Positions 16,771 to 19,700 of a DNA stretch of 64,000 nt are shown here, in pieces (position 1 is the first letter of the stretch; every line of letters begins with the position of its first letter). The stretch is taken from the NCBI GenBank assembly GCA_002104905.1, contig MCFE01000055.1, forward strand, positions 1 to 64,000, read 5' to 3'. The notes below the pieces were generated by a model that was not told the DNA's origin, ran no database searches, and was given only the letters and a program-made list of their open reading frames with translations. The DNA is from Basidiobolus meristosporus CBS 931.73. Lineage: Eukaryota > Fungi > Basidiobolomycota. The position numbers and the translations under genes are program-made.

Positions 16771-19700
16771 CTACAATCCGAACGAACGTCCACGTCGAGA
16801 ACGTGGTGTTCCAGGAGCTCTGAAGCCTGGAGTAGCCATCCGTGATCTAAAGTGACTTGGTTAGTACCAGTTGAGTTACAATGATTTGCTACTTGAAAAT
16901 ATATACTTGGGTGTTTGGGCAACGCGTAGCTCCTCCTCCTCCTCCTTCTTCTTGGTCGCTTCTTCCGCAGCCTTTTTGAACTCATCTTCCATGGACTTGA
17001 GTTCTTCCCGGTCTTGTTTGCGTTTTTCCTGTTGGTTTTCGAGCTCACTTTAGCAAATGTCTCACAAAGTCGGTTTATCCGCAGAGCAAATACCTTGTGA
17101 CTCCAGTTGGACTCCTTGACACTGAAAAACATGGGGCCTATTTGGACCAGTTAGCAACTTGAATGAACCCGTCACCCGAAACATGATCTTACCGAGCTCT
17201 GCTAGCCAATATGGATCGACAGAAGTAACACATTGCATGTACTCTTTCGATGTCATGACAAGTTCGTGATAAACGATGTAGTCGGGTGTATCTTTTGTGC
17301 GATAAAGTTAAGGATTCAACAAGAAAGCCATTTCAAAAGTGATATCTAGTGCAGCACACGAAGAAGGATACATCCCAGGCCATAGAGTGCACTCGTTGGG
17401 TGGAGATGGCAGGGCATGCCAGTTCTACAGTTGACGTATTCGCCAATCCCCTTTAACCGAGCCGCTTGATGGAAATACGCCGAGCAAATACATTTTCTTC
17501 ATGTTGCAAGAAGTCCACCGGTTAATTTTCGCTGTTATCGGTTCAGTGGAATGGTCCATACCTGACTACGTCCCAATTAGTGCCACACGAGACATACGGC
17601 ATCTTCTCAGATTTCATGATATCCATCAACTGGGATCTCACCTCACGCGCTTTGCGCATTGCTTTGGAGTGGATAAAGTGCTCGGTACACCAATCCTCCC
17701 GATAGCTACAGTTGGCGATAACGAAGTCAGCTTTGTCCATTGAGATAAGTCGAAATACAACGTACTTGTTGGCTTTCCATTGCGTATAAACATGCAGCAG
17801 GGTCAAGTGGTCACTCTCCGGCACAAAGAATTTCTCTCTGGCTGCATCGCTCTCTTCCATTCTTTCCTTGGGGCGGTAAAATACAGATGGAACCGACAAC
17901 ATGGACACTATAGTCTGAGAAGATGGTCAGTAAACGGTGCTGCCAGCGGTAAGGGTGAGGATTTTCTGGTGGGTACCAAAATTTCCGCCGTGCAATTTAG
18001 ACTCTCGGAAACGATCAGCATTTTTGCAAGGGATGGATCTAGCGGAAACTCGACCATCTTTCGTCCTACGGAAGTCAACTCGCCGGTATTATCCAAGGCG
18101 CTTAATACCCAGAGCTGGTACATGGAATTCAGAATATTATCCTGAGATAGGGGGTTAGTTGCATTTACACTAAGACCTGTGCAGAAGATAGGGCCTACCT
18201 GGGGTGGTGGGTCCATGAAGTCAAACTGCAGCAAATTCTTGACGCCAAGGGATTTTAAGAGTAGCACCACATAGGCTAAGTTGGTTCTTTGAATTTCGGG
18301 GATTGTGTTGAAAAACAGCTCGTGACGGAACGCTTGTTCAGTGTATAAACGGAAGCATGTTCTACGGAAGTCAAGGTTAGCCCTGGTATACCAACGAAGT
18401 TTCAAAGCCTTACTTACCCTGGCCCGGTTCTGCCGGCTCGACCAGATCTTTGATTAGCATTGGCCTGACTGACTGGAGTGATCTGCAGTGCATCCATACC
18501 AATTTTAGGGTTATAAACCTTCAGTTTACAATACCCAGAATCAACCACATACATAATGCCATCCACAGTTAACGACGTCTCAGCAATATTAGTGGCGACG
18601 ATAACTTTTCGAGCATTGTCAGGTGCTTTATCAAAGATCTTGGCCTGAAGATCAGCGGGCATCTGCGAATAAATTGGCAGGATAGCCAACGGTGGTGGAT
18701 CATCAAGCTGTTCCAGTCGTTCTAGCGATATGGTTGAATGAGTGACTGCGCTCGCCTAAATTACCCACTGGATCCACATACCTGCAAGGACCTGGCATGT
18801 GATTTCGATATCCTCCTGTCCCGTCATAAAGACCAGTATGTCACCGGCGGGGTGTGAGAGGTGAATGGCAAGGATCTGCTTCACCGCACTGTCGACATAA
18901 TCCTCGCAAGGGGTTTTACTGAACATGACGTCCACAGGGAAGGTACGCCCTGGGATGGTGAAGATGGGCACATTCCCAAAGAACGTGGAGAATTTTTCGG
19001 CATTCATGGTAGCTGAGGTAACAATTAGCTTCATGTCACGACGGCGCGCCACGATTCGCTTCAAAAGACCCATCAGAACATCGGTCTGTAACGAACGTTC
19101 GTGAGCCTCGTCCATGATGATGGCACTATAACGGTCAAGATCCGGCTCTCTCAATGACTCTCGCATCAGCACACCATCGGTCATATATTTGATGACCGTT
19201 TTCTCAGAGGTGCAGTCTTCGAAACGAATGGCGTAACCAACAAGGTCTCCTAATTTTGTCTTGAGCAGCAAAGGGTAAGTCGGTGTAGAAGAGAATGTGG
19301 GTCAAACGCGCTTTACCTGAACTTCCTCGCTGACACGCTTAGCAACGGACATAGCAGCAACACGACGTGGCTGCGTACAACCAATCACGCCATAATTGCT
19401 GTACCCGTCTTCATGTAGATACTGAGTCAACTGTGTAGTTTTGCCAGAACCTGTTTCACCTACCACCACAACCACTTTTGCAACCTGTGATTAGACAGAT
19501 ACCTCGTCACATATGTCCCTGTTAGCCACTAACCTTGATTGTCACGGATGATTTGAAGGAGCTGTTCTCTGACCGCAAAGGCAGGCAGGTATTCTCTTTG
19601 CTCTCTTAAGGTTTTGGATCGGGCAAAGTTACTGACAGCATCTGAGGACGTTTTGAGATGAGAAGCAAATTGAGAATCCCCTCGTACATTGGTTCCATCT

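Follow-up and report, generated by a model that had tools for sequence, protein, structure and literature searches.

The splicing-helicase gene PRP16/DHX38 of Basidiobolus meristosporus contains an intron with the full set of U12-type signals, and both signal boxes are kept in the related species Basidiobolus ranarum. We analyzed a single stretch of 64,000 nucleotides, referred to here as the window, in which this gene lies on the minus strand. Its sixteenth intron is very probably a genuine U12-type GT-AG intron, most likely an ordinary one that is removed constitutively and probably one inherited from an older fungal minor intron. From its signals, we infer that its removal would fall to the minor spliceosome. 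The features discussed below are as follows, all on the minus strand of the window.

16771..21431, minus: PRP16/DHX38 coding region, with the ATG at 21431 and the TAG at 16773-16771; 20 exons and 19 introns
17372..17496, minus: exon 16, the first half of the OB-fold; 42/42 residues identical to B. ranarum, covering positions 2-41 of the 83 in the Pfam OB_NTP_bind profile
17292..17371, minus: intron 16; 80 nt, phase 1, GT-AG, U12-type signals
17363..17371, minus: 5' splice site GTATCCTTC, in agreement with the U12 consensus /RTATCCTT
17307..17314, minus: branch-site box TCCTTAAC, with the probable branch A (17308) 16 nt from the last base of the intron
17292..17293, minus: 3' splice site AG, the sole end that keeps both frame and homology
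17193..17291, minus: exon 17, the second half of the OB-fold, placed by frame and by homology to B. ranarum PRP16

The identity of the host gene, which an earlier note on this DNA had given as PRP16/DHX38 in an early-diverging fungus, is borne out on both counts. Its 159-residue exon at 18783-19259 (minus) scores 273 bits against Chaetomium Prp16 and 258 against human PRP16, compared with 213 for DHX8, 205 for DHX16 and 192 for Prp43. A representative search with this exon returned full-length homologues, two of which served as seeds for word searches that led to proteins named PRP16/DHX38 by their sources. Single exons of the gene match the Pfam families DEAD, Helicase_C and OB_NTP_bind; overall, the gene has the DEAH core, Helicase_C, HA2 and OB-fold and is matched better by PRP16 than by PRP22, PRP2 or PRP43. 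It is also collinear with B. ranarum PRP16 (P0213 in our set, 1154 aa), the tblastn alignment spanning residues 1-1154, from the ATG at 21431 to the last codon before the TAG. Apart from the fully identical exon 16, the exons of the helicase part show few residue differences between the two species, whose N-terminal tails share about 57-75% identity. The window therefore belongs to a Basidiobolus genome distinct from that B. ranarum assembly. B. ranarum PRP16 is the closest named public protein among the matches listed. No second Basidiobolus PRP16 protein appears among those matches, though one with >90% identity to B. ranarum would be expected; public annotation of this genome may lack a PRP16 gene model, divide it in two or more, or give it a length beyond the range covered by the search.

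The ends of intron 16 are fixed by homology, independently of its splice signals. Upstream, the coding strand (minus) reads ggc atg ccc tgc cat ctc cac cca acg agt gca ctc tat ggc ctg gga t and then runs into GTATCCTTC; past the AG at 17292 it continues at aca ccc gac tac atc gtt tat cac gaa. Excision therefore yields LYGLG|YTPDY in phase 1, in agreement with PRP16 orthologues, as the earlier note had proposed. Its coordinates for the intron (17292-17371, read on the minus strand) and its reading of GTATCCTTC, TCCTTAAC and the AG are exact, and the distance of about 16 nt that it gave from branch box to AG holds when counted from the likely branch A at 17308 to the last intron base. Other AG or AC ends near the 3' end break the frame; the 75-nt option ending in AC, for example, creates a TAA. 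Between these GT-AG termini, intron 16 has the sequence hallmarks of the minor class: a /RTATCCTT 5' splice site, a TCCTTRAY box within about 10-20 nt of the 3' splice site and a tail between box and AG, TTTATCGCACAAAAG, that is without a pyrimidine tract.

The rest of the gene gives a point of comparison. We drew the intron table of the window gene with the B. ranarum model as a guide, and all 19 intron positions and phases (19/19) are common to the two species. The other 18 introns are GT-AG, 55-106 nt long, with branch sites of the CTAAC, CTGAC or CTAAT type, and none begins with TATCC, in line with the earlier note's view that they are U2-type. Intron 16 is the only one of the 19 with RTATCC signals, and just one intron exceeds its 80 nt, the median being 60. 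Lengths in both Basidiobolus genes are held closely at about 55-65 nt. The U2-type 5' splice sites of these genes (window 16771-21431, minus; B. ranarum locus L001:1501-6216) are very degenerate, with GTA followed by near-zero constraint.

We asked how readily such signals arise by chance. In 200 dinucleotide shuffles, correctly spaced motif pairs occurred 0.2 times per window and at least once in 18% of the shuffles, and at the scale of the window the motif pair alone is not significant. What makes intron 16 non-random is that its pair lies on a frame break demanded by homology and is kept in B. ranarum. A second pair, ATATCCTT plus TCCTTGAT at 46067-46162 (minus) with an AG 25 nt further on, is antisense to a plus-strand protein-kinase coding region and is a chance match, which illustrates how motif scans of this genome yield false positives. 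The seven other RTATCCTT sites in the window fall in coding or non-intron contexts. A copy of GTATCCTTC at 29419 (plus) comes after ...FNLRKKS in the final part of a glycosyltransferase-like open reading frame (28879-29496); the frame runs on into a hydrophobic tail with no branch box and AG after it, and this site is most likely coding sequence and not an intron.

These considerations bear on the alternative that intron 16 is a U2-type lookalike removed by the major spliceosome, to which we give very little credence. RTATCCTT does arise several times by chance in the window, TTAAC-like branch sites are present in neighboring U2 introns, and the local U2 5' splice sites vary so widely that GTATCCTTC does not stand out among them: under a matrix built from 36 Basidiobolus U2 introns its log2 P is -13.5, inside their range of -15.8 to -9.1. 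This looseness is the reason that the matrix fails to set intron 16 apart, and the case accordingly turns on the joint match and on conservation. Both boxes are exact and correctly spaced in an intron whose ends were fixed on other grounds, and a joint match of this kind is very improbable for any one intron. A rough estimate would put it at about 2e-8 per intron, the product of about 9e-5 for the 9-mer under the local U2 matrix and about 3e-4 for an exact 8-mer box within an 18-nt window. RTATCC begins none of the other orthologue introns that we mapped (0/168). The missing pyrimidine tract also speaks against a U2-type intron, as do the minor introns already documented in the genus (PMC10639083) and the conservation of both boxes in B. 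ranarum, where the 5' ends of other introns drift.

The homologous intron of B. ranarum (GCA_040143965.1, L001:5617-5696) is likewise 80 nt long and interrupts the codon in the identical phase. It reads GGAT|GTATCCTTT ... TTCTTAAC, the latter 13 nt before the AG; after the box come 12 nt that close with the AG, and ATACACCCGAC follows. At positions +3 to +9, after the GT, the two species agree at 6/7 bases, compared with 1-5/7 in the 18 U2 introns, whereas the interior of intron 16 has an identity of 0.59, which is background (0.49-0.63 in the other 18 intron pairs). The alignment of the window with B. ranarum contains no conserved element inside the intron besides the splice signals. This pattern, drawn from two species only, fits selection acting on both boxes, and the U12 signals that the earlier note had recognized are thus retained in a sister species.

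In the minor pathway, the U11/U12 di-snRNP recognizes the intron, U12 pairing bulges the branch A, and U6atac replaces U11. Applied to the PRP16 intron, the di-snRNP would bind the 5' splice site and branch box together. U11, and then U6atac in its place, would pair with the 5' splice site at GTATCCTT; U12 would pair with TCCTTAAC through the stretch UCCUUAAC, leaving its second A, 16 nt from the AG, bulged as the branch point. Once excised, the intron would leave the two OB-fold halves of the helicase joined. Our Rfam search covered the 64-kb window, a part of the genome, and gave no match either at gathering score or with a cutoff of E<=1.

To place the intron in a wider setting, we sampled 12 taxa outside Basidiobolus. 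At the same codon and in the same phase, PRP16 of Massospora cicadina has a U2-type intron of 30 nt (GTAAGT...ACTAAAC; ALYGMG^FTPDYI) and that of Jimgerdemannia flammicorona has a U2-type intron of 83 nt (GTAAGT...TTCTAAT; ALFGAG^FTPDYV). There is no intron at the site in eight other fungi, one animal and one plant, among them Funneliformis, Dentiscutata, Apophysomyces, Mortierella alpina, Piromyces, Spizellomyces, the brachiopod Lingula and the liverwort Marchantia. None of the 12 taxa has a U12-type intron at this site, and none has an RTATCC intron anywhere in PRP16. Among the taxa sampled, PRP16 is therefore a minor-intron gene solely in Basidiobolus, and the site itself predates the genus, barring parallel intron gains. 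The Massospora gene (L010:301-4707) is unusual in another respect: most of its 17 introns, the 30-nt intron at the site included, measure 29-44 nt, close to the minimum for a spliceosomal intron.

Change of introns from the minor to the major type was reportedly described by Burge and colleagues in 1998 and by Dietrich and colleagues in 1997. Our site resembles such cases, which are also treated in PMC10639083, in that the same codon and phase hold a U12-type intron in one lineage and U2-type introns in others. It differs in that no U12-type outgroup was observed at the site among the taxa sampled, and the direction that we infer for the change comes from an assumed direction of conversion. 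The history that we favor is that an old fungal U12 intron was probably kept in Basidiobolus, converted to U2-type in the Entomophthorales (Massospora) and Endogonales (Jimgerdemannia), and deleted elsewhere. We regard it as the simplest because Larue and Roy (PMC10639083) treat introns as converting from the minor to the major type and place the entomophthoralean Entomophaga, whose lineage loses minor introns, among the species with strong minor-intron loss.

The reverse order of events, in which an ancestral fungal U2-type intron turned U12-type in Basidiobolus during a gain of minor introns specific to that lineage, is rather unlikely. The sole other taxa with an intron at the site, Massospora and Jimgerdemannia, have U2-type signals, and a low ancestral density of minor introns has been reconstructed for Zoopagomycota despite the top fungal density in Basidiobolus (PMC10639083), which leaves room for gain. 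However, conversion is held to proceed almost exclusively from minor to major, minor signals carrying more information (PMC10639083), and a U2-type intron is what would be expected in the Entomophthorales as a lineage of minor-intron loss. Retention of an old minor intron in Basidiobolus thus continues to be the reading that we prefer.

Failure to remove intron 16 would be costly for the protein. Translation would continue past the exon as G C I L L R V L H, 9 codons in all, before meeting a stop, cutting the OB-fold at about position 41 of the 83 in its profile while three introns remain downstream; the earlier note had rightly anticipated that retention would interrupt the C-terminal coding region. 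An intron-retaining transcript would encode no working helicase and would likely be a target for decay. The earlier note suggested that a slow minor intron could gate production of this step-II helicase and so couple the minor spliceosome to all splicing; slow or conditional splicing, or retention followed by decay, would limit PRP16.

We consider such a gate improbable. In its favor, retention would bring a stop 9 codons on, upstream of three further introns, which is the usual setting for nonsense-mediated decay, with half of the OB-fold lost; the signals are kept across two Basidiobolus species; and minor introns are known to control the levels of splicing factors, as in Srsf10 (PMC7244321) and U11-48K and U11/U12-65K (PMC5473595). 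As a concept, control of this kind is not new. Those cases share with ours a minor intron in a gene of the splicing machinery, but in them splice sites compete or a conserved enhancer binds U11, and the control has been proved by experiment, whereas intron 16 of PRP16 is a single plain intron. Against a gate, it has no conserved element beyond its splice signals and no unusual RNA structure (z-score 0.6). The site is, moreover, U2-type or intron-less in all other taxa sampled, including the minor-intron-rich Glomeromycota and Lingula, and PRP16 therefore manages without such a link in other taxa. The earlier note had suggested comparing the intron position with animal and plant DHX38; the one animal and one plant sampled, Lingula and Marchantia, have no intron there, and intron 16 is therefore no deeply conserved regulatory feature of DHX38. 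The distribution of minor introns has also been argued to be mostly neutral, and cell-cycle-linked minor splicing was not found in a fungus (PMC10639083). The broader proposal, that a retained ancestral fungal U12 intron acts as a feedback link tying PRP16 output and, by way of PRP16, the second step of catalysis in all splicing to minor-spliceosome capacity, strikes us as highly unlikely on the sequence evidence. An ordinary intron removed constitutively remains the reading that we adopt.

The genus is already known for introns of this class. Larue and Roy (2023, PMC10639083) counted 249 minor introns in B. meristosporus, 0.554% of all its introns and the highest density among fungi, and they include it among minor-intron species under a rule of at least two minor snRNAs. 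Intron 16 would be one of roughly 250 minor introns of the genus, and it shares with those catalogued the genus, intron class, GT-AG subtype and consensus boxes. Because they ran intronIC on the public annotation to obtain their count, it may already be within the published 249. Individual genes go unnamed in their paper, and its text and supplement mention neither PRP16 nor DHX38; the conservation in B. ranarum and the U2 state in Massospora and Jimgerdemannia come from the present analysis. The literature on DHX38 together with minor or U12 introns yielded reviews only, none naming DHX38 as a minor-intron gene.

Overall, intron 16 is one more example in a genus already published as the richest fungal holder of minor introns, and it adds to that set one well-documented case in a gene that acts in splicing. 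Its importance would rise if regulated retention were true, although nothing in the present results points there. Three states of the site are seen among the taxa sampled: Basidiobolus has a U12-type intron, Massospora and Jimgerdemannia have a U2-type one, and the others have none. The site can therefore serve as a marker for the loss and conversion of minor introns in fungi.
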